DNA of 64,000 nucleotides, from sequence record OR455461.1; one strand, given 5' to 3'. The position numbers and the translations under genes were made by a program. The notes beneath the pieces are model-generated. The model made no database searches. It was not told the DNA's origin and saw nothing but the letters and a program-made list of their open reading frames with translations. Shown here piece after piece: positions 1,168 through 62,247 of this stretch; position 1 is the first letter of the stretch; every line of letters starts with the position of its first letter.

Positions 1168-3569
1168 TTATTTGAATAAATCCATAATACGTTTATTATT
1201 GTTGTCCATTGGTTTTTGTTGTTGACCAAATATAGAATTACTCATATCATTTCCTTCAATAACACTATTGATACGTTTTATTGAAGTAATATCTTTTCTT
1301 CTAGCTTCTTGTTCTTTTCTGATTCCTTCTGCATTTTCTCCGTTAGATGAGAGTTTAGAACCATATTTAATTTTTACAAATTTATTAATATCCTTTTCAT
1401 AATAATATGCATATAAACAGAATAAATAAGACATCATTAAGTCATCGTGACCTCCCGGTGGATGGTCAATACGTCCTTTAATCATTTGTAAAGATTTTAC
1501 TTCTTGGAAGAGTGCTTTATTATTAATTAAATATGGTTTTTCTTCAACAAGCATAGATAGTATTTCATTTAACATTATATCACGAGATTTTTTAGTTGTA
1601 TCAATACCATATCTACGAGTTTCTTTTTTAACTTTTTCATTTTTACCATATCTAGATACTTCATTAAATAAACCTTTATCTTCTACTTGTTTTTCAGCTA
1701 CACGAGTTTTAAGTGTATAGAATAGATTAGATTCTAAACCATCATAAGTTATCATATGATCAATTACTGTTAAACCTGCATAGTTACGTTCAGGTATTAA
1801 TATAGCGTTAGGTATATAGAAACTAACCAATTCTTTAATTAATTTTCTGAATGTAGGTCCATTAATTACGTTATTTTTAAATGTCATCACTGGTTCCAAA
1901 GTAGCTGGATCCACTACAGTAAATGCTGTATTATCTCGTCCTAAACCACCAGACATATCAATACCAATAAGCCAATTTTTCTCTGTAATATTATCCATAT
2001 ATTTAATCATATTTACATAATAAGTTTTTCCATCAATATTAAATTCAAGAGTATTATATACTTCCTTATTAGCATACATAGATATTTCAGACATTTGCTC
2101 TTCAGAGAATAATGAATCATCAGAACTATAAGCCCATTCCAATAATATTTCACGTTTAACTGCTTCTAAAGAACCAATTTGTCTTTTTTGTTTTGCTAAC
2201 CAATCTTCATCTTTACCTAATTCTTTATATGAATATTCTATATACATGAATTCATTATTTGAATTATCTTCCATGTATTTTTCTAATTTAGAAATTCCTT
2301 CTTCTTCACCATTAATGAAATAATCATATATTTTTTCATTCCATTGAGCTGCTTCATTCATTTGTTGAAAGAAAAATTGCCCATTGTCTTCATCAAGAGT
2401 ACTCAAATTTATTTATTCTTTATAATTATATAAAGTTTAGACTATATCACAATAATTATAATAATTATTATCCATTATTTAGTCGTTGAACATCATTTAG
2501 ATGATGCTGATTAATTTTATAATATTTCAGCAATTAAATAGAAAAGCCCAGTTAATTTTAGGCGTAGTTGTAATTAGAAGTCCATAAGGAGTTCCGTTTC
2601 TTTTAGCAATTGCAGAAGCTGTGGAGTTAGCTGGACGCATGGCCTCAAACATTGTTTGATTATGTTTAATAAATGCCCACTCATCTAGCCAGAATAATGG
2701 CACAGTACCACCTCTCATTTTTCGTTAACTATATGAATTTCATATAGATCAGACTATATCTTAACAATTTCAATGATATTAATATTTAGTCGTTGAACTA
2801 CTATTTTAAGTAGATGCTGATTTATTTAATGATTTTCTCAGCAATTAATTAATTTTATAGCGAGCTAAGGTTATAAATTAATTTTTAAAAATAATTTCCA
2901 TATATGCCATGGAATGATTTAACCCGCTTTATTTGCTTGCTCTTTATTGTTTGGAGGACTGACTGTCTTAATAGTGTTATTATTGGATGCTAATCTAAAT
3001 TCATTTTCAGCATCTTTATCATTCTTATCACCAAAATTTGCCATCACATAATCCGGTAAACATTTTTCTTTAAATAAGTTCTTAAGACGTTTTAAATTCT
3101 CCACTGTATCAGCATAAGCTTTATGTGTAAATAACATTGTATAGTTATTACCTACTAATAACATAATCCATGAATAATAACATACTGCAGAATATGTTTT
3201 ATAGTGCTGACGAGGTAACATTATTGCAGTATCTAAGTTATGCAACATACAGAATGTCATAGCCAAGTTACCTCTATGAAGTTCATACATTACTTTTCCA
3301 CCTGGAACAGGAACTCTAATAACTTCTCTTAAATAAAACCATATATTAAGTTTAGCTTCCCTAATAACACGAGTTTTCATTTCATTATCTAAATCTTCAT
3401 CCCAAGGATCAACACCAATTAATTTCTTATCATATAGAGTTAATGGTAAACCATAATTTTGTATATTATTGTCTTTAAGTTCTTTAGCAACTTTTAAAAA
3501 GCTTATATTATTAGTCTTATAATCGTAATAAACTTTTTTCTTTAATTTTGTTATAGCCATAATCTTCAT
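1168..3569 (-). CDS. terL: Terminase large subunit, 3 exons: join(3569..2922, 2715..2560, 2403..1168), about 679 aa
   Basis: Walker A-like PRQHYKT in exon 1. Junction KAG|RGGTVPLFWLDE restores the GRG/Walker B region. Junction LITTTP|STLD. Exon 3 has nuclease motifs IGIDMSGG..D and GGHDDL. Both junctions are in frame. Confidence 0.92.
2404..2559 (-). mobile_element. Group I intron terL-I2, 156 nt, no ORF
   Basis: P1 exon GCCU/GGGC with U-G at the splice site; P3 UCUAUU/AAUGGA; P4 UGCUG/CAGCA; R element GUUCAACGACUAAA; S element UGAUAUAGUCU; P9 hairpin; terminal G at 2404. Confidence 0.92.
2716..2921 (-). mobile_element. Group I intron terL-I1, 206 nt, no ORF, enlarged L1 loop
   Basis: P1 AGCGGGU/GCUCGCU; P10 ACCUU/GAGGU; P3 AUUAAU/AUUAAU; AAUUGCUG, AAUCAGCA, GUUCAACGACUAAA and AAGAUAUAGUCU core; terminal G at 2716. 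Confidence 0.93.
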
Positions 3570-6617: not shown

Positions 6618-7283
6618 TTACTTTTTACTACGCTTTTTTGTACTTTCTAATTTATTGTATTCTTTTAAATAATTGTCAAATATTTCTTTGTAAGTAGTTT
6701 CAAATTTTTTATATAACTTCTCAGATTTATCTACATCGACAATATTTATAAATTTATTGTTAAATAAATTTATATTATCTTTAAGTTGATCCAGAGATTT
6801 TGTAGTTAATTCAGTTATATCAAACATATCTTTTCTCTCTGAATCTGAAAAATTTTCCATATTTCTGTCATTGATAATGTAGTTAAATTTGTCCATTACA
6901 TCTTTTAATTCAATTAATTTATTAAATATTTGTAATTTTAAAAACTTATCTGAATTACTTTCTTTGGGTTCTTCTGGTGTTTCTTCTGGATTATCTGTAT
7001 CAGTTTCTTCAGATTCAGGTTGTTCAAGATCATTATCTAATCCATCTTCAGTTTCTTCTTGATCTTCCGTAGAATCGTCATTAGAATCATCATTAGAATT
7101 ATCTTCTTCAGTTTCTTCATTATTCTCTTCTTCTGATGAAGTTGATTCAGTATCATCTAATGAATTCTGATCTTGATCATTTTCATCATCTTCAGCTTCA
7201 TTAAGAATATTTTGTTTCATTAATTTATTTATTGATTCAGTGAGTAAATCTCTATTAATATCCATAGTCATTACCACTGTCAT
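6618..7283 (-). CDS. Acidic head-associated (scaffold/core-like) protein
   Basis: D/E/N-rich linker, LTES and LNEA putative protease sites, head gene cluster. Confidence 0.5.
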   Translation of the reverse strand: MTVVMTMDINRDLLTESINKLMKQNILNEAEDDENDQDQNSLDDTESTSSEEENNEETEEDNSNDDSNDDSTEDQEETEDGLDNDLEQPESEETDTDNPEETPEEPKESNSDKFLKLQIFNKLIELKDVMDKFNYIINDRNMENFSDSERKDMFDITELTTKSLDQLKDNINLFNNKFINIVDVDKSEKLYKKFETTYKEIFDNYLKEYNKLESTKKRSKK

Positions 7284-8376: not shown

Positions 8377-9711
8377 ATGTCTAAAGATATTAAAGCTTAC
8401 ATTATTAATGAATCTAATACAACTTCTCAACCAGAAGTAGTTCAAGATAATAATAAATCAGTTAGATTCATTGCTGAGTTACAAGAAGCTGATAGACAAA
8501 ACCGTAATGGTCGTGTTTATCGTAAAGATGTTATCCAAAGTGGTTTAGATAGTCCAGTAGTACAAGAAAAATTAGCAAGAAGAACTTTTTATGGTGAGTT
8601 TTAGGTTAAAATGGCTCACGTTAAATTATATTAATTGCTGAAATCTTATTTAAAGTAATCAGCATCAACTTAATACAAGTTGTTCAACGACTAAATATAT
8701 AACCTAGATGATATAGTCTAATCTTTATTAAAATAATAAAGAATAATAATTTGCAGGTCATCCTTTAAGTGATGAACCTAAACGTCAAATGTATATTGAT
8801 CAACGTAATATTTCTCATATTATCACTAGAACTTGGTGGAATGGTAATAAATTAATGGGAGAAGTAGAAACAGCTCAAACATCAGCTGGTAAGGATATGA
8901 AAGGTTTAATTGGACAAAAATCTGATGTATCTTTCTCAATGCGTGGTTTTAGTAAAATAGAAAGAAAACCTAATGGTGAAGTAGAAGTTACTAAACCTTT
9001 AAGATTAATCTGTTAAATTATAGCAGCTTTATATAGTGATATATAATGAAAAAGAATATTAATTGCTAAGAAGTTTAATTAAGCCAATTAGCATCAACTT
9101 AATACAAGTTGTTCAACGACTAAATATATTCGCTCTTACTAAGAGTATGATATAGTCTCGTCTATATGGAAACCATATAGCTAAGATGTACGTATGACTG
9201 GGTAAAAAATTATTGCTTAGTATAAATAATATTAATTGCTGGAAATCTTTATTAAGATAATCAGCATCGGATTAAATTCCGTTCAACGACTAAATATATT
9301 ACCTAATATAAATTAGGAAGATATAGTCTCGTCTATATGAAAATCATATAGTTAAGATAACGTGTAATTCCATCACATCAAGATTCTTATATCCAAAATA
9401 TAATTTCAGAGAATCATAATAATTACAATACTAGTGATTTACAAATGGTTAATGAATCAATTGATATGTTTTCTAACGGTAAAGTTACAGAATTTTCTCC
9501 TAGAGAAGTTTTAACTTATATTAAAGAAAATTCAGATAATATCAAATATATCGCTGAAGATATGGGATTTGATAAAGCTGATGAATCTAATATCATTTAT
9601 GATAAAGGATCTCAAATAGCTTCAATTAAAGAAAGTAATAAAACTATTAAAGTTTTCTTAGAAGAATCTGTTCTTAATGGACTTGATGATTTCTATAGAA
9701 ACTTTAAATAA
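8377..9711 (+). CDS. Prohead core protease (T4 gp21-like), 4 exons: join(8377..8599, 8754..9013, 9193..9203, 9363..9711), 280 aa
   Basis: NRNGRVY; junction GE-S|GHP restores GExxHP (His); SFSMRG (Ser); LIC|YDWV|VIPSH restores DxVxxPS (Asp). Spliced length 843 nt = 281 codons. Confidence 0.92.
8600..8753 (+). mobile_element. Group I intron pro-I1, 154 nt, no ORF
   Basis: P1 GUGAGU/GCUCAC; P3 UUAUAU/AUAUAA; core AAUUGCUG, AAUCAGCA, GUUCAACGACUAAA, UGAUAUAGUCU; P9 CUUUAUUA/UAAUAAAG; terminal G 8753. Confidence 0.92.
9014..9192 (+). mobile_element. Group I intron pro-I2, 179 nt, no ORF
   Basis: P1 CUGU/GCAG; P10 UUAUA/UAUGA; P3 GAAUAU/AUAUUC; P4 UGCUA/UAGCA (compensatory change relative to the other six); P8 GCUCUU/AAGAGU; terminal G 9192. 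Confidence 0.92.
9204..9362 (+). mobile_element. Group I intron pro-I3, 159 nt, no ORF
   Basis: P1 ACUGGGU/GCUUAGU; P10 AAUUAU/GUAAUU; P3 UAAUAU/AUAUUA; P8 CCUAAU/AUUAGG; terminal G 9362 is the nearby G that restores the frame. Confidence 0.9.
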
Positions 9712-11255: not shown

Positions 11256-11924
11256 TTAGCAATAACTAATTGAATTATATTTTTCTATTAATTTGTTAAA
11301 TGTAATCGGACCAACGTCTCCATCTTGTTTAAGATTATTATCACTCTGAAACTGTAATAAAGAACTTAACATAGTTCTATCAAATACATAGTTTTTACTA
11401 TCGTATTTATTAGCAGAATACCCCAAACCTGTCAGTGCGATACCAACTGTATTAACATCATTACCTTTCATATTATCTTCCCTATACATTAATAATCTGT
11501 AATAGCTTCCTTTAAGATTTCTATTATTTGAAATAGATGGTTCTTCAGGTTTATATTTTCTAGGTAAATGCATATCATAGTAATAAGGAAATTTAGGATT
11601 ACCATTATGGAATTTAAGTATAACTTTATCATAAAGGTTAGGTTTTCTTAAAGGTTTATCTAAATCATTATTCATTAATGGTTGACAAATTAAATAATTA
11701 CCTATGTCTACTTGACTTCTTACATCTAGATCTTCTATATTTATTATATTATTAATATTTAGGTTTCTTTTGATATTTCTTGGGGAATCCTGCAATTCAG
11801 TCATAATAAGTTCATACACAAATAGCTTTACTTCATATGTTTCATCGAAATCTGTATTATCTATAACTACAGCTTCAAAGTCTCGACCAAAATCAAATTC
11901 TTTAAACGATTCTTTATATTGCAT
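11256..11924 (-). CDS. Baseplate spike/hub-like protein (gp5-type OB fold) with C-terminal peptidoglycan-binding domain
   Basis: N-term AVVIDNTD...KPNLYDKVILKFHNGNPKFPYY; C-term GNDV...LTGLGY...FQSDNNLKQDGDVGPITFNKL typical of PG_binding_1. Confidence 0.65.
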   Translation of the reverse strand: MQYKESFKEFDFGRDFEAVVIDNTDFDETYEVKLFVYELIMTELQDSPRNIKRNLNINNIINIEDLDVRSQVDIGNYLICQPLMNNDLDKPLRKPNLYDKVILKFHNGNPKFPYYYDMHLPRKYKPEEPSISNNRNLKGSYYRLLMYREDNMKGNDVNTVGIALTGLGYSANKYDSKNYVFDRTMLSSLLQFQSDNNLKQDGDVGPITFNKLIEKYNSISYC

Positions 11925-19538: not shown

Positions 19539-22500
19539 TTGATTAGTATTCTTAATACTGATAGAAATAGAATTGAAAATAAAATAATATCAGACACTTT
19601 TGAAAATGTATTATCTTATGAAAAATTAGTGTATGATTTTAAAAATAAAACTGAAGTAATTAACTTAACTTTTAAAAATAAAAATTATATTCCATTAAAT
19701 TCATATATAACTGTATTAGATGAAAGTAAAAATGAATCAGAATTTGTATGTATTAAAGAAAATGATAAAGATTCAATTTTAATTCCTGCTTATACTAAAG
19801 ATTTGAATAATAAATTTACTTCTTCAACTCAAGAATTAAAAGGTTCATTGAAATCAATTATACAAACTTTACTACTTAACACAGGGTATAAAGTTGAATT
19901 TAATGATTTAGTTCAAGATGAAGAAATAATTGTTAAAGAAAGCAAAAAAACTATATATGAGAAATTATTAGATATTTTATTTGAAAAAGATTTATCTATT
20001 AGACATAAATATGATTTAGATAAAAATGAAAGAACTTTAATAATTAATAAAGGTAAAGATTTAAGAAAATCTAATCCTAAAGAAATTAATGGTAGAATTC
20101 CTGGATTTGAATTTAATATCGATAAGTCTAATATTAAAACTGCTTTAATTGTCTATGATAAAACGAGCAAAGAATCAATCACAGTTAGAGATTCTATTAA
20201 TCAAAAACGTTTCATTAAAAATAATGAATATATCTTTGATACTATTGAAGTAGAAAATAAATCTAAAGAAGAAATGGAAGATATTGCTAATTTAAAACTT
20301 AAAGAGAGTTCTTTAAATTCTATTGAGTTAAAATTAACTGGTTTAGTTTTAAGACAATGGACAAATTGTCATTATAATAAATTTATTTCTAGTCAAATTT
20401 TCATCGATTATAAAATAGTTTCTCCTGAACTTATTTCAGGATTTCAAATAAATAAATTAGAGAGAAGTTTATTTGATTATAATATAGAAAGATTTAATTT
20501 TTTTGCTAGTTATAAGTCTTCTAATGAAGTTAATTCACCTGAACTTATATCTAATTATCTTAATGAAGGTAATACAAATATTATAATTGACGAAAATTCT
20601 TATTCAGATAGTAACGATATGAAATTATTAGAAAATTTAATTAATAAGAAAATGGAATCTATTAAAGAATATATAGATAATATTACTAATAATTCAAATA
20701 GTGAAGGTTCAATAGGATTAGGTAATTTAAAATCTAATAAAGAACTCAATTTCGATGCCATTATTTCTGATTATAATATAATTAAATCTCAAAAAGATAC
20801 TGTTAATAATCAATTAAAATCAATATTTGATTCATCTTATCTTAAAGAAGATTCAATTAAAATTCAGGTTAGAGATAAAATTAAAGAAATTGATAATGGT
20901 TTTGAGAACCTTAAGTCTAGTGTGAATACTCTTAATAGAGCTGATCAAGATGAAGAGTTAATGAAAAACATTAATAAAGATTTTATAAGCTTTTATAATA
21001 TCATAAAATCTACTAAAAATATTATCGAAATTTCTAATGAAGCAATTAATTTAGAAATGAATAAACTTCAAAATGAATATTCTCATGGTATTAAAGATAC
21101 TGTATTTAATGAAATTGCTAGAGTTTTAGGTTTAAGTTACGATAGTAAAACTCAAGTTCTTAAAGGTAATATTAATTTAATGTCAGATATAAATGATATT
21201 AGAAATTCAATGGACTTAATGAGAGATAAAGTAAGTAGAATTGAAAATGATCTAAGTGATTCAGGAGTTGTTTTAAGAGGTCAATTAGATAATCTTAAAG
21301 AAAATATAGCTAATGTATTAGGTTTACCTTTAAATTCTGAATCTGGTATGATTGATGGGTCTATTGACAATCAAGATTTAATAGATAAAATTAAACAACA
21401 AATTTCTGATGTAAAAGATAATATTGAAACTTCTAAAAATAATTTAATTGAAGTTAAAAAAGATTTAGAAACTCAACAAGATGAATTACAACAAAAATCA
21501 TTAGATATAGATTCTGTAATGGCAGAAGCTAACTTAGTTAGAGAAGAATTAACTCAAGAATTGGAAACTTCTCAAAAAGAATTTGATTACTATATGGATT
21601 CTCGTGGAGACAATTTAATATTCAATGGTAATGCGGATCAAGGTGATGAATCTAATTTCCCTGGTATGTATTATGATCGTAGTGATGCATTCCAGTCAGC
21701 CGCTTCTTTTAGAATGGATGGATTTAATACAACTACTCAAACAGAACGATTAATTCCAGTTAATCCAGAAAAAACTTATAAGCTTTCAATGTTCTTAAAG
21801 AATAATAATTCATTACCTTCTTCAATAGGTCATTTAAGTTATGATAAAGATGGACAATTAATTGAATCTCAACATGTAATGGGTTCTGAAAAACCAGTTA
21901 TAACTTTAGCACAAGAATTAAGACAAGGAGATAAAGTTATATATTTCAATAGTCTAGATGGTCTTGATGATACTTATAGATTCCAATCAGCATCTTTAGA
22001 TGAAGAAGATGACACACCTAATTATGATTATGATAGAGACGGTTCTGTAGAGATAACTCAAAATGATGATATGTTGTCTATAGACGATCCAAATGCTGTT
22101 CCAGATCCTGAAGAAGAAAATATTTTATATGCTGAAGATACATCTGTAGTTTCTCCGGAAGATGCTACCGACCCTGAAGATATAGATATCCCTATGAGCG
22201 AATCTGATACCCCTACAGAAACAAACTCAGAAGTTGTTGACGAAGATGAAGCAATTAAAAATATGTCAAATAATTATAACATATCTAACGCAGGGATAGT
22301 TAATAGAAATATTAATCCTAATTTAATTGATTATAATGATAATCATTCATTAGTTATTTGGGATTTTAGAAGTAATGACGGTTATAGATATGGAGAATCT
22401 ACTTATTCTAGAAACGTATTTATGAATGCTTGGGATTATGGAGCTATTGATAGAGAAAATAACTGTATTTATCTTAATAGACCTTTTGATTTAATTAACT

Positions 22501-25500
22501 ATGATTCTGAAGATGGAGCATTTCCTGCTGGTACTAAAGTATCTGGTACATTTACTGATGATAATGTACAATGGTCTTTAATTAAAGACGAAGATGTTCC
22601 TAATGAAGATAAAGATGATGATCCAGAAGAATTTAATGGTTGGTACCATAGACAAGCATTAATAACTAAAGAAAATATTAGAGGTACTAATGGATTCTTA
22701 TACGGTACATTCTATACTACGTTATTCTTTAAAGTAAACCAATCTGAAGATTCTGATATAGTTGAATTTGAAGATGGATCTGATGAACCTAAATTCTGGA
22801 TAACTAATTTAGAAATGTATGATGTTACTGGATTAGAATCTGTTAGAAAAACTGTAATAGATACTAATGAATTAGTAGCTACTATGATGACTAAAAAAGA
22901 AATGGATGATTACCGTAAGCAAGTTATAGAAGGTTTCTCTGAAGTTAGTCAAACAGTAGATATGATTCGTCAAGAAGTAACTAAAAAGATTAATGATCTT
23001 GATGATAAAGTTATTAATGAAGTTACTTCTCGCATAGAAACTATAGCAGGACAAATAGACTTAGTTTCTGAAGCTCAAAGGGTAGATAAAGAAGAAGTAG
23101 ATAAACAACTAGGTGAACTTAAAATAGAAACTGATAAGATTTCATCTATAGTTCAAAGAGTAACTTCCACTGAAAGTAGTTTTAGTGATTTATCAACTAA
23201 AGTTGATCAACTTAATGATAGTTATTCAATCACCGCTGAGAAAGTTACCAAACAAGGTGAAAATATAACAGATCTTACAGGTCAATTAACAGTAGCTAAT
23301 GATGCTATTTCACAAGAAGTCCAAGATAGAAAATCTGCAATTAATGATACTACTGAAACTTTAACTGGTAAAATAACAACCACTGCAGATTCTATTAGAC
23401 AAGAAGTATCTAAAGATTATGCAACTAAAAGTAGTGTTAATGAAACAGTTTCATCTTTAAACACTTCAATAACTGCAGAAATTGGTAGAATTGATCAACG
23501 TGTTACTTCTGAAACTAGTACTGAATCTATTTCTGGTAAAGTTAAAATTGGTGCCAAAAATATGATTGCTGGAACAGAAAAATTTGATTTACCTTTCTTA
23601 GCTAGTATTACTAAAAAAGATAATAATGGTATTACTTATGCTAATACCAAAACAAATTTAGCTGAAGTTTCCCAAATAGTTGCAGTTAAACCTAATACAA
23701 ATTATGTATTGAGTTATGATGCTTATTCAGCAGCTGCATCTCCAGTAATTAAAACACCTATTACGAAAGCTTCAACATTAACTACTGAAGTTTCTCCTAA
23801 AGACTATTTAATTACTTTAACTGAAAGTGCTAAAACATTAACTACTACACCTACTAGATATGAATTGAAATTTAACTCTAAAACTAATAATTTCCTTAAA
23901 ATTCAGTTCACTGCGGATAATACAACCAAGGATACTTATGTAGGTCATATTCAATTAGAAGAAGGTAATGTAGCATCTACATGGGATATTTCTCCAGAAG
24001 ATTATAAGAGTAGATTTGCTAAGAATGAAACTCGTATAACTCAAACTGAGAAGGATATTACACTTAATGCTTCTTCTATTACACAATTAGATACTAAAAC
24101 TACTAACCAATATAGTGAATTAAAAGTAGAAACTGATAAGATCACTTCCATTGTTAGTAAGCAAGACGAAATGGATGGTAAAATTGCATCTAATACTTCT
24201 AGCATTCAACAGTTACCAGGTCAAATAACATCACAAGTTTCTGCTGTTGAAAGTAGAGTTAATGAGAATATTAATAATATACAAGTCGGTGCTAGAAATT
24301 TATTAGAGGATAGTAGGTCTTATAATAAAGGAATTAATGATAATTCGAATAACACTTACACGCAATTATGGTATATCAATATCAATTCAATTAAAGATAA
24401 AGTCTCTCTAGATGATAATCTTACGATTTCATTTGATTTACAGATGCAAAAAGGACTATATTTTAGTATATATGATACTCAAAAACATGGAACGATTCAA
24501 TTTGGTAAAGTCACTAAAACTAATTTAGGAACTAATAAATTTAGATATTCTGCAACTATGAAATTAACTTCCGCTACTAAAAATAGTGATGATTGGTATA
24601 TTTATGCATATAATAATAATGCTACTGATGATAAATTTACTATTGAAAATATTAAGATAGAAAAAGGTAATAAAGCTACTGACTGGTCTCCAGCTCCTGA
24701 AGATATTAATTCACAAATCAATAATATACAAGTAGGGTCTAGAAATTTATTAAAAGATTCTAAAATAAATAAAACTACTAGTATTTATGAAATTAATGAT
24801 TTCTATCTAACAGAAAATATAGAAGAAGGAACCGAAGTCACATTCACTATGAAAGCTGATTTAGGTTCAGATAGAAAATACTTTTCTTTGTATAATTCCG
24901 GTGGTTTGGTTATGCAACAAGTTAATTTATATCCTTCTGATAAAAATAGTAGAGGTATATTCTCTAGAACATTTAAATGGAAAAAAACGAGAGATGGTGG
25001 GACTGTTGCATCCAATACTTTCTTAAGAGTATATCATATGGAAAAAACAAATACGAGTAATTCTACTATTTATTGGGCTAAACTTGAATATGGAAATAAA
25101 TCCACTGACTGGACTCCAGCACCAGAAGATATTGATAATAAAATAGATAATAGTGTAACTTCATTAACTACTTCTATCAATCAATTACCAGATCAAATAT
25201 TATTAGAAGCTAAGAAAACCACTATAACTGAAATTGGTAAAATTGAGGTTGGTGGTAGAAATTTATTAAATGATAGTAAACCATCTTCAAGTTCTTATTG
25301 GAGATTTACTGAATCTAGTAAAAGTAGTGATAATATTAATCATACTCAAATTAATGGTGAGTTACCTATTGTAAATAAACAGAATTCATGGAAACAGTGG
25401 CAAATATATAGTAATGATAAATTTAGTGATAAATATGTAGATAATTTGAATAAATTAGATGCCGGTTCCTTATATACACTATCAGTAGATATTAAAAAAA

Positions 25501-28169
25501 TAGACATTAATTCTACAGGTAATGCCCAAATAATGATTAGATTTGACTCTCCATCAGGAGCAACTAATAAACTTAGTAGAGATATAGATATAGAAAGTGA
25601 ATTAACTAGTAGCTGGAAGAGATTTTCCATAACTGATACAATAACATCTGAAGATTTAGCATCAAATACACTTGTAAGAATTATATTATCATATGCAGGT
25701 GGTAGTAAAACTAATAATGGTTCTATTTCTTTTAAAAATGTTAAATTAGAAAAAGGTAATAAAGCTACTGACTGGACACCGTCTACAGAAGATATAGAGA
25801 CTTCCATATCAACTGTATCATCTAAAATAGATCAACGAGCTGATTCAATTGAATTAAGCGTAAATAAAATTAATGATACGCTTAATGCAGACAATATATT
25901 AATAAATTCAGACTTGAGTAATGGATGGGAAGGCTGGACTCAAAGTGATACAGCTACTTCTAAAAGCTTAAATTACGTTGAAGAAGTGTCTAATGCATAT
26001 TGGATCTTTACTAATTCTGGAACTGAAGTTGCTGTTACTAATAAAGATCTTAAAGATCAAGATTATTTATCCTTAACTTCAAAATCAGAAGGTTGGAAAC
26101 AATGGCAAGTATCAGACATAGATTATAAAGATGGTAATGGTAGTCCTAAGATGTCTAAAATAACTGCTGGAACATATACAATGAGTATGCAAGTTAGAAA
26201 AGATGCTGGAAGTACTGGTATACTTAAACCTTTTATCAGAATTAATAAAGGATCTTCAACTACTGATCCATTAGTTTATGAAATGGATGTAGATAGTACT
26301 TTAGATACTGAATGGAAATGGATTACTGCTAAAGCTACAATAACTGCAGCTCAATTAACTGATAAAACACAAATTCGTTTTATTATAGTATATCAAGGTT
26401 CAGGAACAGGAACCGTTTATGCTAGAAATATTCGTCTAGATAAAGCGGACAATCCACAACCACCTAGATTTAGTATCCCTGAAGACAATGACTTCTCTAT
26501 AAATACAGATGGTAATATGGCAATTTCACCTAGATATAGAGACGATTTTATATCTAGAGGAGTTTATAAACGTACAGTAATTAATCTATCAAAACCTTTT
26601 GTAAAAGGTAAAACTTATAAATTTGCTTTTGATTATAGTATATTAACAGGAAGTAATTCTGCTAGTAAAATATCAATATTTCCTTATAGATATCCTTGGG
26701 GTGGAAATTTCCCAAATGAAGCTAGCTCTGCTAATAGAGTTGATTATTCTGTTAATATTAATTCTAGAAATATTATTGAATTTACTGTTAATGAAGAAGG
26801 ATGTAATCAATTATTATTATATGGTGCACCTGCTGGAAGCTCAGATAACTCAGGAATTAATGCATTATTCGAAAATATTAAACTGGTTGAAAAAGTTGAT
26901 GGAAATGAAGATATGACATTTAATCCAAGTGCTGTTAAAAGTGTTTTTAGATATAAGCATAATAACTTCGGCTCAAGTTGGCCTTCCATAATATCTAACT
27001 ATATATCTATTGGTAGAGGTAGTGACTTTAGTGTAGGTGATGAAATTACAATGTCAGCTTATATTTATGTACCTTCAAGTGCTAAATATAAAATGAAAGG
27101 TTCAATATATTTTGAAACTGCCACATATGAAAATGTAAATCAAAATGGAAATCCTATGTTTGGTAGGTATTCTTCTACTCAAAATCCTATACAATATGAT
27201 ACTTGGGTAAGATACAGTTTTACTGCAAAAATTCCTAGAACATCATCCAATGGTATTACTAACTATGTAAGAGTTCTATTAAGATATAATAATGGAACTG
27301 TGAGTAATGATGTTGATGATGATAATGTGTTTTATTATGCTTTACCTAAATTGGAGAAAGGTAATAAAACAGTAACACAATGGACTCCATCTACTTTAGA
27401 TAGATTTAGTACAGAATCAATGTCAAGTAAAATTGCAATGAATAGTGAAGCAATTAAAATGATTTCTAGAAATATTGATTTAAATACAGATAAAGTTAGA
27501 ATTTATAATGATAAAGGTAACTTAAGTTTCACTAATGATGTTCTGAGAATATCTAAAACTGCGTTAGATGCAGATAATTATGTAGAGATAAATTCAGCTG
27601 GATTAAACATTAGAAAAAATGGCGTAGACACTATGGTCGATGGAATGTTTAAAGGTGAGACTAACGTTCAAGCTACATTTCCTTCAGTAAGAAGTGCAAA
27701 CCCTCCAGGTTCAGGTTCATATGACGGTCTTTACCATATAGCAGAAGATCATGTTACTGGTGCATATTATATAGATGCAGCAATGTATAAATATAGTGCC
27801 GATAAAAAATATCTAGTTGAGAATGGTGGATCTCAGAATGCATTAGCTGGAACATATTCTTACTTTCATGATAAGAGATATTTAGTTGTAAGTTTAAGTT
27901 ATACTACTACTAAAAATGCAAACTTACACGTAACTGTTGCTGCAGGTGTTGGTTGGAAAACAGATTCAAAAACTGATCTACACTTTGATAAAAAATATAC
28001 AACTTCAAGCAATGGAGTCATTGTTGAATATATAGATATAGGAAAACCTACAAATATGTATAGAACACTAGTTATTGAATTAGGTGTAACAGGGACTACT
28101 ACTAAGGGTGAAGGCGGTTTCGTTCAATTTAAGAGACTTGCACTTAGCAATTTCAATTCAATATCATAA
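19539..28169 (+). CDS. Giant tail / receptor-binding protein (2876 aa) with coiled coils and repeated carbohydrate-binding modules
   Basis: Repeated GxRNLL...LEKGNKATDW(T/S)PAPED modules; heptad regions; AACA-N6-TA at 19498-19509. Confidence 0.85.
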   Translation: MISILNTDRNRIENKIISDTFENVLSYEKLVYDFKNKTEVINLTFKNKNYIPLNSYITVLDESKNESEFVCIKENDKDSILIPAYTKDLNNKFTSSTQELKGSLKSIIQTLLLNTGYKVEFNDLVQDEEIIVKESKKTIYEKLLDILFEKDLSIRHKYDLDKNERTLIINKGKDLRKSNPKEINGRIPGFEFNIDKSNIKTALIVYDKTSKESITVRDSINQKRFIKNNEYIFDTIEVENKSKEEMEDIANLKLKESSLNSIELKLTGLVLRQWTNCHYNKFISSQIFIDYKIVSPELISGFQINKLERSLFDYNIERFNFFASYKSSNEVNSPELISNYLNEGNTNIIIDENSYSDSNDMKLLENLINKKMESIKEYIDNITNNSNSEGSIGLGNLKSNKELNFDAIISDYNIIKSQKDTVNNQLKSIFDSSYLKEDSIKIQVRDKIKEIDNGFENLKSSVNTLNRADQDEELMKNINKDFISFYNIIKSTKNIIEISNEAINLEMNKLQNEYSHGIKDTVFNEIARVLGLSYDSKTQVLKGNINLMSDINDIRNSMDLMRDKVSRIENDLSDSGVVLRGQLDNLKENIANVLGLPLNSESGMIDGSIDNQDLIDKIKQQISDVKDNIETSKNNLIEVKKDLETQQDELQQKSLDIDSVMAEANLVREELTQELETSQKEFDYYMDSRGDNLIFNGNADQGDESNFPGMYYDRSDAFQSAASFRMDGFNTTTQTERLIPVNPEKTYKLSMFLKNNNSLPSSIGHLSYDKDGQLIESQHVMGSEKPVITLAQELRQGDKVIYFNSLDGLDDTYRFQSASLDEEDDTPNYDYDRDGSVEITQNDDMLSIDDPNAVPDPEEENILYAEDTSVVSPEDATDPEDIDIPMSESDTPTETNSEVVDEDEAIKNMSNNYNISNAGIVNRNINPNLIDYNDNHSLVIWDFRSNDGYRYGESTYSRNVFMNAWDYGAIDRENNCIYLNRPFDLINYDSEDGAFPAGTKVSGTFTDDNVQWSLIKDEDVPNEDKDDDPEEFNGWYHRQALITKENIRGTNGFLYGTFYTTLFFKVNQSEDSDIVEFEDGSDEPKFWITNLEMYDVTGLESVRKTVIDTNELVATMMTKKEMDDYRKQVIEGFSEVSQTVDMIRQEVTKKINDLDDKVINEVTSRIETIAGQIDLVSEAQRVDKEEVDKQLGELKIETDKISSIVQRVTSTESSFSDLSTKVDQLNDSYSITAEKVTKQGENITDLTGQLTVANDAISQEVQDRKSAINDTTETLTGKITTTADSIRQEVSKDYATKSSVNETVSSLNTSITAEIGRIDQRVTSETSTESISGKVKIGAKNMIAGTEKFDLPFLASITKKDNNGITYANTKTNLAEVSQIVAVKPNTNYVLSYDAYSAAASPVIKTPITKASTLTTEVSPKDYLITLTESAKTLTTTPTRYELKFNSKTNNFLKIQFTADNTTKDTYVGHIQLEEGNVASTWDISPEDYKSRFAKNETRITQTEKDITLNASSITQLDTKTTNQYSELKVETDKITSIVSKQDEMDGKIASNTSSIQQLPGQITSQVSAVESRVNENINNIQVGARNLLEDSRSYNKGINDNSNNTYTQLWYININSIKDKVSLDDNLTISFDLQMQKGLYFSIYDTQKHGTIQFGKVTKTNLGTNKFRYSATMKLTSATKNSDDWYIYAYNNNATDDKFTIENIKIEKGNKATDWSPAPEDINSQINNIQVGSRNLLKDSKINKTTSIYEINDFYLTENIEEGTEVTFTMKADLGSDRKYFSLYNSGGLVMQQVNLYPSDKNSRGIFSRTFKWKKTRDGGTVASNTFLRVYHMEKTNTSNSTIYWAKLEYGNKSTDWTPAPEDIDNKIDNSVTSLTTSINQLPDQILLEAKKTTITEIGKIEVGGRNLLNDSKPSSSSYWRFTESSKSSDNINHTQINGELPIVNKQNSWKQWQIYSNDKFSDKYVDNLNKLDAGSLYTLSVDIKKIDINSTGNAQIMIRFDSPSGATNKLSRDIDIESELTSSWKRFSITDTITSEDLASNTLVRIILSYAGGSKTNNGSISFKNVKLEKGNKATDWTPSTEDIETSISTVSSKIDQRADSIELSVNKINDTLNADNILINSDLSNGWEGWTQSDTATSKSLNYVEEVSNAYWIFTNSGTEVAVTNKDLKDQDYLSLTSKSEGWKQWQVSDIDYKDGNGSPKMSKITAGTYTMSMQVRKDAGSTGILKPFIRINKGSSTTDPLVYEMDVDSTLDTEWKWITAKATITAAQLTDKTQIRFIIVYQGSGTGTVYARNIRLDKADNPQPPRFSIPEDNDFSINTDGNMAISPRYRDDFISRGVYKRTVINLSKPFVKGKTYKFAFDYSILTGSNSASKISIFPYRYPWGGNFPNEASSANRVDYSVNINSRNIIEFTVNEEGCNQLLLYGAPAGSSDNSGINALFENIKLVEKVDGNEDMTFNPSAVKSVFRYKHNNFGSSWPSIISNYISIGRGSDFSVGDEITMSAYIYVPSSAKYKMKGSIYFETATYENVNQNGNPMFGRYSSTQNPIQYDTWVRYSFTAKIPRTSSNGITNYVRVLLRYNNGTVSNDVDDDNVFYYALPKLEKGNKTVTQWTPSTLDRFSTESMSSKIAMNSEAIKMISRNIDLNTDKVRIYNDKGNLSFTNDVLRISKTALDADNYVEINSAGLNIRKNGVDTMVDGMFKGETNVQATFPSVRSANPPGSGSYDGLYHIAEDHVTGAYYIDAAMYKYSADKKYLVENGGSQNALAGTYSYFHDKRYLVVSLSYTTTKNANLHVTVAAGVGWKTDSKTDLHFDKKYTTSSNGVIVEYIDIGKPTNMYRTLVIELGVTGTTTKGEGGFVQFKRLALSNFNSIS

Positions 28170-35793: not shown

Positions 35794-36420
35794 TTAACCG
35801 AAAATACGATCTAATGATTCTTCTAATGATTCGTTTGTGCTTTCTTCATCTTCTGAATCTTCTTCTTCGTCTTCATCTTCTTTAGTAATTTTATCTACAT
35901 CTTCTTCAGGTTTTTCTTTAGAATCTAGAGATTTTTCTGAATTCATTTTGTTAGCTTTAGTTGTCTGCTTATCCACATCCATCTCAGGCTTTTCATTTTC
36001 TTCGAATAGACGTTCTAATTCTTCTTCTAATGAATCTTCATCATCTTCAGAATCTTCATCTTCGTCTTCATCTTCATCTTCTTCTTCAGAATCATCTTCG
36101 TCAGACTCTTCAACTGAATCTTCATCTTCTTCAGAATCATCTTCGTCAGACTCTTCAACTGAATCGTCTTCATCTTCATCTTCTTCAGAATCTTCTTCAT
36201 CTGCCGATTCAATGAGGTTTTCAAATTGTTCTTCTACTGAAGTTTCCTCTGAATCTTCATCATCTTTTTTATCAGATTTTGTTTCAGAATCTTCTTTAGA
36301 TTCACTTTCATCTTCATCTGCTGATTCAATGATACTTTCGAATTGTTCTTCAAGAGCTTCTTCCTGAGCTTGCTCGAAAAGTTGTTCTAACTCTTCTTGA
36401 ATTGCATTTTGTTTTTCCAT
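35794..36420 (-). CDS. Extremely acidic protein, scaffold/internal-head-like
   Basis: D/E/S-rich with many LEE, IIES and LIES motifs. Confidence 0.55.
   Translation of the reverse strand: MEKQNAIQEELEQLFEQAQEEALEEQFESIIESADEDESESKEDSETKSDKKDDEDSEETSVEEQFENLIESADEEDSEEDEDEDDSVEESDEDDSEEDEDSVEESDEDDSEEEDEDEDEDEDSEDDEDSLEEELERLFEENEKPEMDVDKQTTKANKMNSEKSLDSKEKPEEDVDKITKEDEDEEEDSEDEESTNESLEESLDRIFG
36081..36165. repeat. 45-bp-period tandem duplication (DSVEESDEDDSEE x2)
   Basis: Identical 40-mers at 36081-36120 and 36126-36165. Confidence 0.9.
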
Positions 36421-40486: not shown

Positions 40487-40530
40487 TAATTTTATTAGAA
40501 AGATATATGATAATATCTTTCTTCATTATT

Positions 40531-40543
40531 ATAATATATACTT
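40531..40543 (-). promoter_or_regulatory. Early-type promoter AAGTATATATTAT (other copies at 41772, 46351, 50162, 50856, 51843, 53873, 61054, 62788)
   Basis: Perfect 13-mer, always sense to the next gene and just upstream of it. Confidence 0.7.
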
Positions 40544-40548
40544 AATCT

Positions 40549-40854
40549 TTATTTCGTTTCAAACTTTTCAATGCCTTTTTCTTCAATAACTACATCTGCA
40601 TTTAATACTTGTAAACGTTTACCATCTACATTAATAACAATGTAACTACCGCCTGCTTCATCACTATATTTAGTTCTGATTTTCTTTCCTTCATATTGAT
40701 GTAATACTTTACCATCTTTACTATATATAGTTACTTTTCTTTCTAGACCTGATGTATCTGATTTATGATCTTTAGTAGCATCATCAAACCATGTACAACC
40801 TGCTAACACTGTTGTTAATAATAAAACTCCAAATAACATTAAAATCTTTTTCAT
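40549..40854 (-). CDS. Phage lipoprotein (DUF5052-like)
   Basis: Lipobox VLAGC; GLERKVTIYSKDGK...YEGK pattern. Confidence 0.7.
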   Translation of the reverse strand: MKKILMLFGVLLLTTVLAGCTWFDDATKDHKSDTSGLERKVTIYSKDGKVLHQYEGKKIRTKYSDEAGGSYIVINVDGKRLQVLNADVVIEEKGIEKFETK

Positions 40855-50101: not shown

Positions 50102-50213
50102 AATAATTTCTCCTTTTAATTTTATTAGAAAGAGATTATGATAATCTCTTTCTTCATTATTATAATATATACTTATTTTAATATACGTTACGCTTTTTCA
50201 AATTCAATTGATT

Positions 50214-50795: not shown

Positions 50796-50881
50796 AATAA
50801 TTTCTCCTTTAATTTTTATTAGAAAGATATTAATATTCTATCTTTCTTCATTATTATAATATATACTTATTTTAGTATACA

Positions 50882-51788: not shown

Positions 51789-51888
51789 TGATTCATCTCC
51801 TTTTTATTTATTTAAAATATATTATTATATATCTTCATTATTATAATATATATTTAAATTAATGATAATTACGAAAAAAAAAATATTA

Positions 51889-53818: not shown

Positions 53819-53890
53819 TTTAATAATTTAATATAGGTAATGAGCGTTATAATATTTGCTCATTACCTATTTATAATATATACTTATTTC

Positions 53891-56254: not shown

Positions 56255-56455
56255 TTACTTATTCACTTTGATTGCATAATCATAAAGTATCAAAGCAGTA
56301 TTAAAAGCTATATTATCTAATTTATTAATTCCCCTTTTAATTCTACCAATTTTAGCTCTACTTATTCCAGTACATTTTTCAATTTCATAATTACTAATCT
56401 CTTTATTATTTAATAGTTTTTCTATCTCATATTTAACTTCTTCAGCTTTATTCAC
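56255..56455 (-). CDS. Small XRE-like HTH regulator
   Basis: ISNYEIEKCTGISRAKIGRIKRG. Confidence 0.7.
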   Translation of the reverse strand: MNKAEEVKYEIEKLLNNKEISNYEIEKCTGISRAKIGRIKRGINKLDNIAFNTALILYDYAIKVNK

Positions 56456-58120
56456 TAGCTTTAATACCTACATTTTTTGATTTAGGGTTATTTAGTAAAT
56501 AAACAGCTATTTGTGAGTCTTTATTAAGCGAGTAAGTTCTATTAAATAATCCATCATTATATGAAATTAATTGATTTACTGGATCTTGGACTTTTAACTG
56601 TTCGTATTGTTCTTCTGAAAATAGTGCTATGATGTTTAAAGTGTCACCATCATACGTTTATCTTAATCTATATAAATATTATCATATAGACGAGACTATA
56701 TCATTACCATTTAAGGTAGAATATATTTAGTCGTTGAACAAATTATATTAATTTGATGCTGATTAATTTAATAATCTTCTCAGCAATTAATATTCTTTTC
56801 TATAAATCTCTCAATTTAAAGCGACTATTATTTAATCGGCCATTTGTATTAACTTCATAGAGATTTTTCTATAAAGATTAGACTATATCAAACTCATATT
56901 AGTGAGTGAATTTATTTAGTCGTTGAACAATCATCTTGATTGATGCTGATTAATTTAATAATCTTCTCAGCAATTAAAATTCTTTTGACATTATATTACT
57001 ATAATGAAAGGCTACCTTTATAACCCATACCAGCAAGTATATTATTACTAATACCTACTACTGATGATTCTATATCTTGAATTATATCTTTAATTTTCAA
57101 TATTTGAACAGAGCTTTCACTAATTGAGGGATTTCTATTTAAAATAACTCTCATTCCATTTTCAGTTTTATCAACTAGTTCTCTCATATATTTATATACT
57201 TTAGGATTAAATGTATCTAATGCTCTGTCTAATATTTCTTCACCTTTAGCTAAAGGAATATTTTCTGTTACATACATTAAATTTGCTAAGATAGGTTTAT
57301 ATACTTCTAAGAAGATAGTGTAATTTAATCTGATTTCATTTAATTTAAGGTCAGGTGCTGGAACAATTACTGAACGTGCAGAGAAACCAACACGACTACC
57401 CATTAGTAATTTACGAATAGTTCCACCTTTACCTTTAATATTCTCATTAATTACACGATCACTAATATTAATACTATCATTCTGAATTTTACTTAATAGA
57501 TTTAATTTTTGTAACTCCACTGAATCATCTGTATAATGTCTATCAAGTTCTTTAATACTATTACTATGTGCAATTAATAAATTATAATCTTTATTAATTT
57601 CAGAATGTCTAAAAGTTTTAGTAGCTTTGTTAACTGTAGCAGGTCTTAATTTAGGACTAAATACAGTTACATAATTTTGGAATAGTAAATCAGATAAATA
57701 CCATTGTACTACTCTATTGTAATCTTTAGTTTTACGTTTATCACGTTTAACTTCTTCTTTAAGAATTTTTAAGAAATTCTTTCTAAATTCAATTAAACCA
57801 ATATAAGAGTTATGATCATCTTCAGGTTCAATTACATTACCATTCTCATCAATAGGTTTTTCAGAACTAATAATTTCTTGGAATCTTTTATTACCAATTA
57901 ATTTTTTAACACGTTCATATCCTAATGGATTTAATATATAATTATTACCTAAATCTACAATAGCTTCATTAGTAATATTATCTGCTTCTGAATCAGGACC
58001 GAAGATTTTTTCACTGAAAATACCATCTTCAGTGAAATCTCCTTTTTTATCTATTGATTCATGATTAGTTACAACTGGAACATTTTCTAAATCCTTTTTC
58101 TTGAGTAAAAATCTAACCAT
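56448..58120 (-). CDS. rpoC: Non-virion RNA polymerase beta' subunit, N-terminal part, 3 exons: join(58120..57023, 56840..56835, 56654..56448), 436 aa
   Basis: DGIFSEKIFG, MGSRVGFSARSVI, LNRNPS. Splicing gives LAGMG|AD|YDGDTLNII, the catalytic DxDGD motif. Close to AR9 nvRNAP beta'N from recall. Confidence 0.93.
56655..56834 (-). mobile_element. Group I intron rpoC-I2, 180 nt, no ORF
   Basis: P1 CGAU/GUCG; P10 AUAAUA/UAUGAU; P3 AGAAUAU/AUAUUCU; conserved core; terminal G 56655. Confidence 0.92.
56841..57022 (-). mobile_element. Group I intron rpoC-I1, 182 nt, no ORF
   Basis: P1 GGGU/GCCU; P2 CAUUAUA-GUAA-UAUAAUG; P3 GAAUUU/AAAUUC; conserved core; terminal G 56841. Confidence 0.92.
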
Positions 58121-61596: not shown

Positions 61597-62247
61597 TTAA
61601 CTAAATAAAGAATTTATAAATATAGATCTATATTCTTTAATTGTAATTTCTTTATTATAATTGAAGAATATATTTTTAGACTGCTTTAAAGTTAAAAAGA
61701 ATTCAGCTAATGTTAATGCTTTAAGATATTGCTTTTCATTGTCTCTATTTTGTTTAAATAAATTAATGAATATATCTTCAATTCCTATTTCTTTAAAATT
61801 GTCTATATAGAATTCTTCTTTAATATCCTTCTCTACATATGGTACTTTAGTTATTGTAAAATATGAATTATTAGTTTTAACTAAATTATTTGAATCTAAT
61901 AAATCATCTATTTCTGGTTCAGTAAGACTATTAATTTCTTTAAAATCTCTGAAATTATTTACTTTTTTAATATTCTCTTTTATTAAATTTAATGTCTGAT
62001 GATTTACTATTTTACTATAAAAATTCATAGTAGTTCTTTCATTTGAGAATATATTTTCCTCCAATATTAAAGAATAACTAGCATTATTAATCATTAAAGC
62101 ATTACTATTTTCTGTAATATCCAATTGCTTTTCAATTTGTTCCATTATATCTTTATCGTAATCTATAAGTAGAACAATTGTGTTTAAATTCTTTTTATAC
62201 GTATTCCTAGATCTTTTTTGAAAATTAATTAAGTACATTATAACCAA
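61597..62247 (-). CDS. Hypothetical protein with C-terminal tag (ITIKEYRSIFINSLFS)
   Basis: ORF plus tag. Confidence 0.72.
   Translation of the reverse strand: MVIMYLINFQKRSRNTYKKNLNTIVLLIDYDKDIMEQIEKQLDITENSNALMINNASYSLILEENIFSNERTTMNFYSKIVNHQTLNLIKENIKKVNNFRDFKEINSLTEPEIDDLLDSNNLVKTNNSYFTITKVPYVEKDIKEEFYIDNFKEIGIEDIFINLFKQNRDNEKQYLKALTLAEFFLTLKQSKNIFFNYNKEITIKEYRSIFINSLFS

Follow-up and report, generated by a model that had tools for sequence, protein, structure and literature searches.

The DNA analysed here, called the window, is a stretch of 64,000 nucleotides (nt) identical (100%) to positions 62001–126000 of the genome of the Staphylococcus jumbo phage AH12 (OR455461.1), whose relatives are Machias, PB50, LY01, Madawaska, MarsHill, S6, DC4, PALS_2 and SA1. 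Its prohead protease gene is interrupted three times, and the first of these inserts, pro-I1 (window positions 8600..8753, plus strand; 154 nt, 22% G+C), is the main subject of this study; it lacks the paired regions P2 and P8 of a group I intron. The second, pro-I2 (9014..9192, +; 179 nt), has P8, a GUGA-capped P2 and a P9 that ends in a GAAA loop, and is separated by the 11-nt mini-exon UAUGACUGGGU (9193..9203, +) from pro-I3 (9204..9362, +; 159 nt), which has P8 and no P2. Four similar inserts lie on the minus strand. The large terminase gene contains terL-I1 (2716..2921; 206 nt), without P2 and with a 56-nt P1 loop that accounts for its extra length (P1 AGCGGGU/GCUCGCU), and terL-I2 (2404..2559; 156 nt), without P2 and with a P8 of A-U pairs only. 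The gene for the non-virion RNA polymerase β′ subunit contains β′-I1 (56841..57022; 182 nt), with a GUAA-capped P2, and β′-I2 (56655..56834; 180 nt), with a GAGA-capped P2; between them stands a 6-nt mini-exon, GCCGAU (56835..56840), encoding Ala-Asp of the catalytic ADYDGD loop, and the next exon follows at 56654..56448.

We fixed the boundaries of these inserts by alignment to empty sites in intron-free relatives, using DC4 and SA1 for the protease gene and DC4 for terL and β′. AH12 and DC4 are roughly 80–85% identical and have the same gene order in every region compared. Against the uninterrupted 843-nt protease genes of DC4 and SA1, the AH12 gene gave three clean gaps at 8600–8753, 9014–9192 and 9204–9362, and all seven window inserts (154, 179, 159, 206, 156, 182 and 180 nt) were exactly absent from the relatives' alleles, as were 15 further introns of AH12 outside the window (vs. 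DC4 or SA1). The lengths in the original prediction, made from the letters of the window, were thus exact for pro-I1 (154 nt), pro-I3 (159 nt), terL-I2 (156 nt) and the larger inserts of 179–182 nt. Splice sites chosen from P1 pairing and open-frame continuity gave several candidates per intron and were wrong for a 194-nt intron, so empty-site alignment was used instead.

Exon 1 of the protease gene ends in GGUGAGU at 8599, an in-frame stop lies three codons into the insert, and the frame resumes at 8754. The mini-exon UAUGACUGGGU aligns with TATGATTGGGT in the genes of DC4 and SA1, which have no insert, and the DC4 β′ gene reads without interruption GGT GCT GAC TAT GAT GGA GAC at the place where AH12 carries β′-I1 and β′-I2. 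The large terminase of AH12 (window 1168–3569, −) was rebuilt in full from exons 3569..2922, 2715..2560 and 2403..1168, with the unbroken DC4 gene of 2034 nt as the alignment reference. The mini-exons that part tandem introns in AH12 measure 11, 6, 18 and 15 nt, the last two lying outside the window at genome positions 154190–154207 and 11530–11544. In the case of the 6-nt β′ exon, the 3′ splice site lies only 6 nt from the next P1, which implies an order of splicing or a coupling between the two events. Within 8600–8753 there was no reading frame of at least 40 amino acids (aa) on either strand, exon read-through aside.

These exon maps bear on whether the inserts leave the RNA at all. In jumbo phages the coding sequence for RNA polymerase is naturally divided among several genes (PMC7598289), and the AH12 record lists the exons as separate hypothetical proteins; both observations would suit inserts that stay in the RNA, with the split genes translated as fragments or the ribosome bypassing the insert as in T4 gene 60. 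We judge this very improbable, because the mini-exons of 6, 11, 15 and 18 nt are untranslatable alone and yet encode conserved residues, including the catalytic-loop Ala-Asp, all tested exon junctions keep the frame and fall exactly on U|...G| boundaries, downstream exon starts are unrelated to start codons, and each insert carries a full group I core with covariation. Excision in vivo is instead suggested by two lines of reasoning: mini-exons of 6–18 nt cannot be expressed separately, and essential single-copy genes are interrupted at conserved residues in phages (AH12, Machias, LY01, PB50, Madawaska and MarsHill) that have been isolated and propagate (10.1101/2020.12.14.422802). In the Machias record the protease gene is joined from three pieces, and the annotation seems to take pro-I2, the mini-exon and pro-I3 as one intron.

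The structure map of pro-I1 begins in the exon, all elements lying on the plus strand. The last six bases of exon 1, GUGAGU (8594..8599), form the 5′ strand of P1 and end in the 5′ splice-site U8599; after a 14-nt P1 loop (8600..8613), the internal guide sequence GCUCAC (8614..8619) provides the 3′ strand and the wobble pair U8599·G8614. The linker GUUAAA (8620..8625) leads from P1 to P3 in 6 nt where P2 would sit. P3 pairs UUAUAU (8626..8631) with AUAUAA (8697..8702), in a register set from compensatory changes among the seven window introns. Between its strands lie the P4–P5 arm (8632..8664), from which P5abc is absent and which consists of the joining segment J3/4 (UAAU, 8632–8635), P4 (8636..8641/8659..8664) and P5 (8645..8647/8653..8655); the P6 hairpin (8666..8682), with strands CAACUU (8666–8671) and AAGUUG (8677–8682) around a loop AAUAC; and the R element (8683..8696), comprising J6/7, the 5′ strand of P7 (A8687, bulged C8688 and GACUA at 8689–8693) and J7/3 (AAU). 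Compensatory changes in P6 are visible in every family member. Downstream of P3, seven unpaired bases, CCUAGAU (8703..8709), replace the P8 hairpin. The family-invariant S element (8710..8719) follows with J8/7 (GAUA), the 3′ strand of P7 (UAGUC, 8714–8718) and U8719, completing a P7 of 8689..8693/8714..8718 plus A8687-U8719, with C8688 bulged; its G8689-C8718 pair stands at the guanosine-binding-site position. The P9 hairpin (8723..8741) has strands CUUUAUU (8723–8729) and AAUAAAG (8735–8741) and a loop, AAAAU, that is not GNRA, and the 3′ tail (8742..8753) contributes U8752 to the P9.0 pair with A8721 and ends in the terminal G8753.

There is no room in pro-I1 for P5abc, P7.1/7.2 or P9.1/9.2, and the structure map confirmed that the 154–159-nt introns have neither these nor P2, as had been predicted. 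The claim that P8 is reduced to a few bases in pro-I1 also agreed with the map, where only CCUAGAU (7 nt) was found in its place. Two details needed correction: the linker from P1 to P3 is short in all three introns, at 6, 5 and 3 nt rather than 4–6 nt, and the 179–182-nt members do add a P2 hairpin (6–7 base pairs, bp), with GNRA-type loops in all three (GUGA, GUAA and GAGA) and not in two.

The sequence and splice-site features of group I introns recur throughout. All seven window inserts share AAUUGCUGA (element P), AAUCAGCA (element Q), GUUCAACGACUAAAU (element R) and GAUAUAGUC (element S). The R element is invariant in sequence across the family, and its 17-mer has 8 occurrences within 3 mismatches in the window vs. 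1.2 expected, one of which (27074) is not an intron. Exact lengths were obtained for 22 of the 31 AH12 members from empty-site alignment to DC4 or SA1, and for one more by hand. A scan for P1 helices ending in U·G covered the 22 introns with empty-site boundaries and returned 3–8 bp for 21 of them (the row for g17624 seems to have been parsed wrongly); for the remaining intron, pol-154, P1 was set by hand at no fewer than 7 bp. The guide was placed 2–6 nt before P3 or directly before P2. A terminal G ends every mapped intron once the ambiguity of the empty-site alignment is resolved, and P9.0 covaries between A-U and G-C. The core helices P3, P4, P5, P6, P7 and P9 occur in canonical order with the P3/P7 pseudoknot. 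The P8 hairpin is present in the other six window introns and missing from pro-I1, which speaks against a textbook architecture and not against group I ancestry.

We built a covariance model (R1) from a hand-written structure of P3-P4-P5-P6-P8-P9-P9.0, a format that cannot hold P7. In the window it found exactly the seven copies and nothing else (expect values, E, 1e-10 to 1e-23; pro-I1 108.8 bits), and in whole-genome searches it found 31 members in AH12 and none in DC4. Across the 81 distinct sequences in the alignment of its matches, 94.2% of cells paired, vs. 38–45% when partners were slid by 1–3 columns; all 34 pairs changed on both sides, and the covariation score was 0.77 vs. ~0.1 in controls. 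Covariation was strong in P3, P4, P5, P6, P8, P9 and P9.0, with paired cells at 91% in P3, 99.8% in P4, 85% in P5, 97.9% in P9 and 94.9% in P9.0; P7, counted separately, was near-invariant, with rare compensatory changes among relatives. In the Madawaska orthologue of pro-I1 (155 nt) the sequence of P5 is wholly different and the hairpin is kept (AGAU/AUCU vs. CUU/AAG). Thermodynamic folding of pro-I1 recovered P1, P4, P5, P6 and P9 (−30.6 kcal/mol, z −3.2), the centroid fold recovered P1 and P9, and the minimum-free-energy fold of a 144-nt AH12 intron also gave P7 (−23.6 kcal/mol, z −2.3). Rfam run over the whole window returned nothing at the gathering threshold nor at E ≤ 10. When RF00028 was applied to 8560–9400 with laxer filters, all three protease introns matched over the full model (pro-I2 45.5, pro-I3 41.6 and pro-I1 32.6 bits; E 3e-10, 4e-9 and 2e-6), and the alignment of the 144-nt intron likewise spanned the whole model, with deletions at P2 and P8 (27.7 bits, E 2e-5).

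The missing P2 and P8 and the Rfam scores under threshold would also be compatible with decayed intron remnants, whose host copies would be pseudogenes or assembly errors. This is the least probable of the readings that we weighed, and we give it hardly any credence, because phages sequenced independently of one another share these introns at identical positions (AH12, Machias, Madawaska and LY01 all have pro-I1, at 92–100% identity), core sequences are invariant and helices change only in a compensatory manner, the host genes are single-copy and essential in viable phages, and P8-less copies occur in further genes. Splice-site rules, the P/Q/R/S core, the Rfam match, covariation and empty sites together bear out the identification of the inserts as group I introns, and 8600–8753 is very probably a group I intron without a reading frame, from a young 31-member family in AH12, that is excised by the standard route. 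In that route, P1 (GUGAGU/GCUCAC, with U·G at the splice site) would dock into a core of P3, P4–P6 and P7, free guanosine bound in P7 would attack after U8599, and the terminal G8753, positioned by P9.0, would then replace the guanosine, after which the exons would be ligated.

Several points weigh against this interpretation. Every RF00028 score is under the 50-bit gathering threshold. The covariation alignment was fitted to its own model, so that pair counts are somewhat inflated, but the margin over controls is large. The family is young, with the result that the core helices P4 and P7 barely vary within AH12. Textbooks count P8 as part of the conserved core, and none of the characterised active group I introns known to us lacks it. 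The case for splicing, here and for the whole clade, is argued from sequence. Finally, in the minimal members the lack of a recognisable tetraloop-receptor clamp and the low predicted stability (−31 and −24 kcal/mol) make unaided folding doubtful.

pro-I1 belongs to a family whose members in AH12 are all at most 212 nt long, too short for an endonuclease gene, and none is therefore of the homing-endonuclease type. Their host genes are indispensable and include those for prohead protease, large terminase, RNA polymerase β and β′, gyrB, nrdE and an Exo-motif gene that we read as DNA polymerase. Class A members lack P2 and pass from P1 to P3 via 3–6 nt; they measure 144, 147, 149, 151, 154, 154, 156, 159, 162 and 165 nt, plus one of 206 nt with a large P1 loop, and include introns in gyrB (144 nt), virion RNA polymerase β (147 nt), a β′ gene (149 nt), the Exo-motif gene (154 nt) and nrdE (162 nt). 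Class B members (173–212 nt) have a 25–28-nt segment that forms a P2 of 6–8 bp with a GNRA loop. Four class A members, of 144, 147, 149 and 154 nt, are also without P8, which in pro-I1 is replaced by the seven unpaired nt described above. The minimal members have 19–26% G+C and weak A-U helices. The view that the 154–159-nt window introns are unusually small held good as to size; they are not the smallest of their family, since AH12 also has members of 144, 147, 149 and 151 nt.

The minimal AH12 members are smaller than any group I intron with a canonical core that we know of or found. In the literature searched, which left out most subscription journals, we came across no account of group I introns of ≤160 nt with a canonical core, or of natural ones without P8; among work on the smallest or minimal group I introns only fungal degenerate introns turned up, and the text of the paper on a database of 42,459 introns states no minimum length. 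Because fungal introns of 56–81 nt exist, smallest must here mean smallest with a canonical core. The AH12 introns may be the smallest natural introns with a normal group I core, and they are candidate self-splicing RNAs.

Introns as such were already known in this phage clade. Korn et al. described 'intron-disrupted' genes of the phages MarsHill, Madawaska and Machias, including those for prohead protease, large terminase and RNA polymerase subunits, from protein alignments only, assigning no RNA class and leaving terL unreconstructed (10.1101/2020.12.14.422802), and according to the DC4 paper Rfam gave no introns for that phage (PMC10638138). The miniature architecture is without description in the literature that we found. 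MarsHill has, in the same protease gene (L003:1035-1775), a much larger intron with a LAGLIDADG homing-endonuclease gene, and endonuclease-bearing and miniature introns without reading frames alternate at the protease locus within the clade.

The anatomy of the minimal members leaves room for two views of how they fold. They keep the P1 wobble, J4/5, J8/7, the P7 G-C pair with its bulge, P9.0 and the terminal G; neither of the usual long-range clamps is left to them, and A-U pairs make up their helices, and the loss of P2 in pro-I1 takes the GNRA tetraloop L2 with it. We consider protein-free, guanosine-dependent self-splicing at raised Mg2+ about evenly balanced with a need for a protein or chaperone. 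A specific form of dependence, in which a trans-acting protein replaces the lost P2–P8 clamp, falls in our estimate slightly short of an even chance; it is a view of mechanism only and takes the inserts to be group I introns. CYT-18 and LAGLIDADG maturases, which support fungal mitochondrial introns, serve as the model, and the candidate cofactors are a maturase or a relative of homing endonucleases encoded by the phage, an RNA chaperone, of the cold-shock type or another, and the translating ribosome. Dependence would be in keeping with members that have no P2, P8, GNRA L9 or peripheral domains, 19–26% G+C and weak A-U helices, and with a clade that has many homing endonucleases, including a LAGLIDADG gene in the MarsHill protease intron (10.1101/2020.12.14.422802); the AH12 record lists a 'cold shock protein' gene, and some Bastillevirinae introns were spliced in vivo and failed in vitro (PMC11878797). 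However, no candidate cofactor is tied to the introns by position or co-occurrence, the introns have no reading frames of their own, and the catalytic core sequences are fully conserved. Small size is no bar to activity either, as the sunY 'miniribozymes' of ~180 nt and the 205-nt Azoarcus intron are reportedly active alone. We also considered temperature sensitivity as a consequence of weak introns, given that the clade fails to grow at 37 °C; the idea is not supported, because S6 is also sensitive and has no match to the family by BLAST.

Loss of P2 and state of P8 are linked across the family and its relatives. Among 88 distinct cores, a GNRA-capped P2 was present in 0 of 19 P8-less cores vs. 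14 of 69 cores with P8. Loop type and helix motif went together: GYRA loops (GUAA, GUGA, GCGA) occurred with a CU:AG step in P8 in 7 of 9 cases and GRRA loops (GAAA, GAGA) with CC:GG in all 5 cases (hand-calculated Fisher p ~0.005, 14 cores). Such a match between the L2 loop and the motif in P8 is the signature of a tetraloop-helix contact, of the kind known from Azoarcus and reportedly described by Costa and Michel, and P8 in the larger members looks like a receptor for L2. The G/C steps of this motif are gone from most of the class A introns in which P8 persists. Shrinkage appears to have been stepwise: in the simplest history P2 was lost first, its receptor P8 then drifted and decayed, and P8 itself disappeared last. 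A tree of the 31 cores, short and with weak overall support, placed the P8-less copies in two clades (Shimodaira–Hasegawa-like approximate likelihood ratio test, SH-aLRT, 98 and 81), each present in two genes. On this tree P8 appears to have been lost at least twice, and the P8-less copies either invaded further essential genes or lost P8 in parallel. The presence of these clades in essential genes indicates that the form is tolerated where the phage cannot do without the gene.

Insertion sites share short motifs that match the guide. Eight of 10 introns without P2 follow GGGU or GAGU, with the guide GCUCNN or a one-base variant (5′ exon ends, for example, at window 8594–8599, 9197–9203 and 2922–2928); ACUGGGU is targeted in two unrelated genes and UUGGGU in three, and three genes are interrupted after GCCGAU. 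Target choice would seem either to be directed by RNA pairing, in the manner of reverse splicing, or to reflect homing between paralogous motifs. The fuller proposal would be that the 144–154-nt members without P2 and P8 are autonomous and clamp-free, with a catalytic core that needs no stack partner of the P3–P8 kind, the smallest natural complete group I self-splicers, reaching guide-chosen sites by reverse splicing and not by an endonuclease; we regard it as possible, on the unlikely side. In a second β′ gene beyond the window (AH12 ~11380–11715, −; L127), two introns outside the 22 mapped appear to follow GGC, with C·A replacing the near-universal U·G, a reading drawn from the uninterrupted DC4 sequence GGT GCA GAT TTT GAC GGT GAT. 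A reverse transcriptase was considered as a driver of spread and rejected: an RVT_1 protein of ~500 aa is encoded by both AH12 (L129:1982-3535, −; E 5e-20), with 31 introns, and DC4 (L135:25252-26754, +; E 6e-21), with none, so there is no correlation. The gene is preceded in both genomes by ~1.1–1.3 kb of unannotated DNA, and it is this protein that Korn et al. had described as a 'retron-like' reverse transcriptase (10.1101/2020.12.14.422802).

We then assessed how far the family extends. By BLAST, the exact family occurs only in six Staphylococcus jumbo phages, at 10–33 places each, and a search for the P/Q/R pattern in 185,579 bacterial and archaeal species genomes gave one contig, unconfirmed by R1. 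In the IMG/VR database, R1 made 118 matches in 99 loci that had been fetched beforehand by an R...S sequence pattern. Many of these come from contigs of 200–400 kb, with up to 13 matches per fetched locus, often in tandem in RNA polymerase genes, and several related introns lie in contigs of 360–400 kb. P8 was missing from 12 of 61 measurable IMG/VR cores, or 13 of 68 with the seven window cores (pro-I1 included). Two introns mapped by hand measured 163 nt (L018:427-589, without P2 and P8) and 175 nt (L048:7740..7566). Model matches of 88–120 nt were considered as still smaller introns and ruled out by inspection: L017:11682-11777 is the 3′ half of an intron bearing an HNH endonuclease gene, and the intron matched at L048:7586-7701 truly ends 20 nt further on, has P2 and P9 and measures 175 nt. 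Model end-points are therefore not splice sites.

The phenomenon is less isolated than the original prediction assumed, because compact introns have already been reported in gut jumbo phages: the 'Jug' phages contain 2513 group I introns of ~206 nt on average, compact and without reading frames, and 37 of 76 predicted group I introns had splice junctions in metatranscriptomes (PMC12880540). The several IMG/VR contigs of 360–400 kb with related introns have the size given for the Jug phages, and we infer that they belong to them.

Other features of the window include an A+T-rich repeat of ~50 nt (D10, D13) at 40490–40554, 50121–50185, 50815–50879, 51802–51866 and 53848–53896. Read in reverse complement, the repeat includes TATATTAT, which Korn et al. 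give as the early-promoter consensus of the AR9 type (10.1101/2020.12.14.422802), and the repeats are probably early promoters of minus-strand genes. A reading frame of 2876 aa (19539–28169, +) holds internal modules D5, D9 and D20, in units of 53–104 nt spaced ~430–660 nt apart, with two more copies of the D5 module at 33412–34441; its repetitive product may be a tail-fibre or structural protein. Long GAA/GAT-rich tracts at 35800–36400 (−) and 7037–7201 (−) correspond to Asp/Glu-rich low-complexity protein segments (D1, D2, D7, D12).

As one of the main systems in which RNA folding and catalysis are studied, group I introns are also of practical use in circular-RNA production and trans-splicing. 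With a natural core of 144–154 nt, tested by evolution, that has neither P2 nor P8, the lower size limit of the canonical fold would move down, and it would be seen which parts of the scaffold are dispensable. A single genome holds the whole gradation (P2 and P8 both present, P2 absent, both absent), in effect a deletion series already made for studies of structure and folding. Default Rfam scans miss the family, with the consequence that phage records show essential genes as fragments; the exon maps mend the AH12 genes for protease, terL and RNA polymerase β′, and the same annotation problem probably affects many A+T-rich jumbo-phage genomes.

Among known systems, the pre-tRNA-Ile intron of Azoarcus sp. 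BH72 (subgroup IC3, ~205 nt) is the usual benchmark for the smallest self-splicing intron, and the 212-nt psbA intron of cyanophage S-PM2 is a further small benchmark. Like the Azoarcus intron, the AH12 introns are compact and free of reading frames, with P1 and P3–P9 and without P5abc or large peripheral domains, and the 173–212-nt members also share a GNRA-capped P2 that apparently docks on P8. In contrast, the Azoarcus intron is G+C-rich, has two tetraloop-receptor clamps (L2-P8 and L9-P5) and sits in a tRNA anticodon loop, whereas pro-I1 and the 144–149-nt members have no P2, P8 or GNRA L9, have ~22% G+C, are 50–60 nt shorter and interrupt protein-coding genes. The clamps of the Azoarcus (IC3) type are absent from pro-I1, and a GAAA L9 was found only in pro-I2.

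With the introns of T4 td, nrdB and sunY, SPO1, Twort orf142 and the Bastillevirinae (mostly IA2), the AH12 family shares its location in essential phage genes for DNA metabolism and structural proteins and the same P/Q/R/S-type core. Several introns per gene with small internal exons also occur in phiNIT1 (PMC11878797). Classical phage introns, however, have P2, P7.1/P7.2 and P9 extensions, usually a homing-endonuclease gene, and ~250–350 nt of non-coding sequence (350 ± 108 nt in Bastillevirinae; PMC11878797), unlike the AH12 family with no reading frames, no P7.1/7.2 and 144–212 nt.

The introns of the IMG/VR jumbo phages are the closest relatives by covariance model. Like those of AH12 they are A+T-rich, numerous in each genome, often in tandem in RNA polymerase, terL and nrd genes, and apparently mostly without reading frames, although a few matches are halves of endonuclease-bearing introns. 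They differ in being unrelated outside the core and, where mapped by hand, in lengths of 163 and 175 nt, above 144 nt; the Jug introns are given as covariance-model matches only, without structural dissection (PMC12880540).

The 'degenerate' introns of fungal nuclear small-subunit ribosomal DNA (Phialophora PaSSU, Porpidia, Arthonia) are shorter still, at 56–81 nt, and one is reported to splice in vitro by the group I pathway; they have putative P1, P7 and P10 only and are without P3–P6, P8 and P9 (PMC3160393). Unlike these, the AH12 introns have P3–P7 and P9 and reside in protein-coding genes of phages, which places them outside that class. As for engineered RNAs, the Tetrahymena deletion series and the sunY minimal ribozymes established that a P1 + P3–P9 core of less than 200 nt can be active, and the ~180-nt sunY 'miniribozymes' of Doudna and Szostak (1989) reportedly retained P8. 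Those minimal ribozymes are artificial, whereas the AH12 introns are natural, smaller, and kept in essential genes of viable phages.

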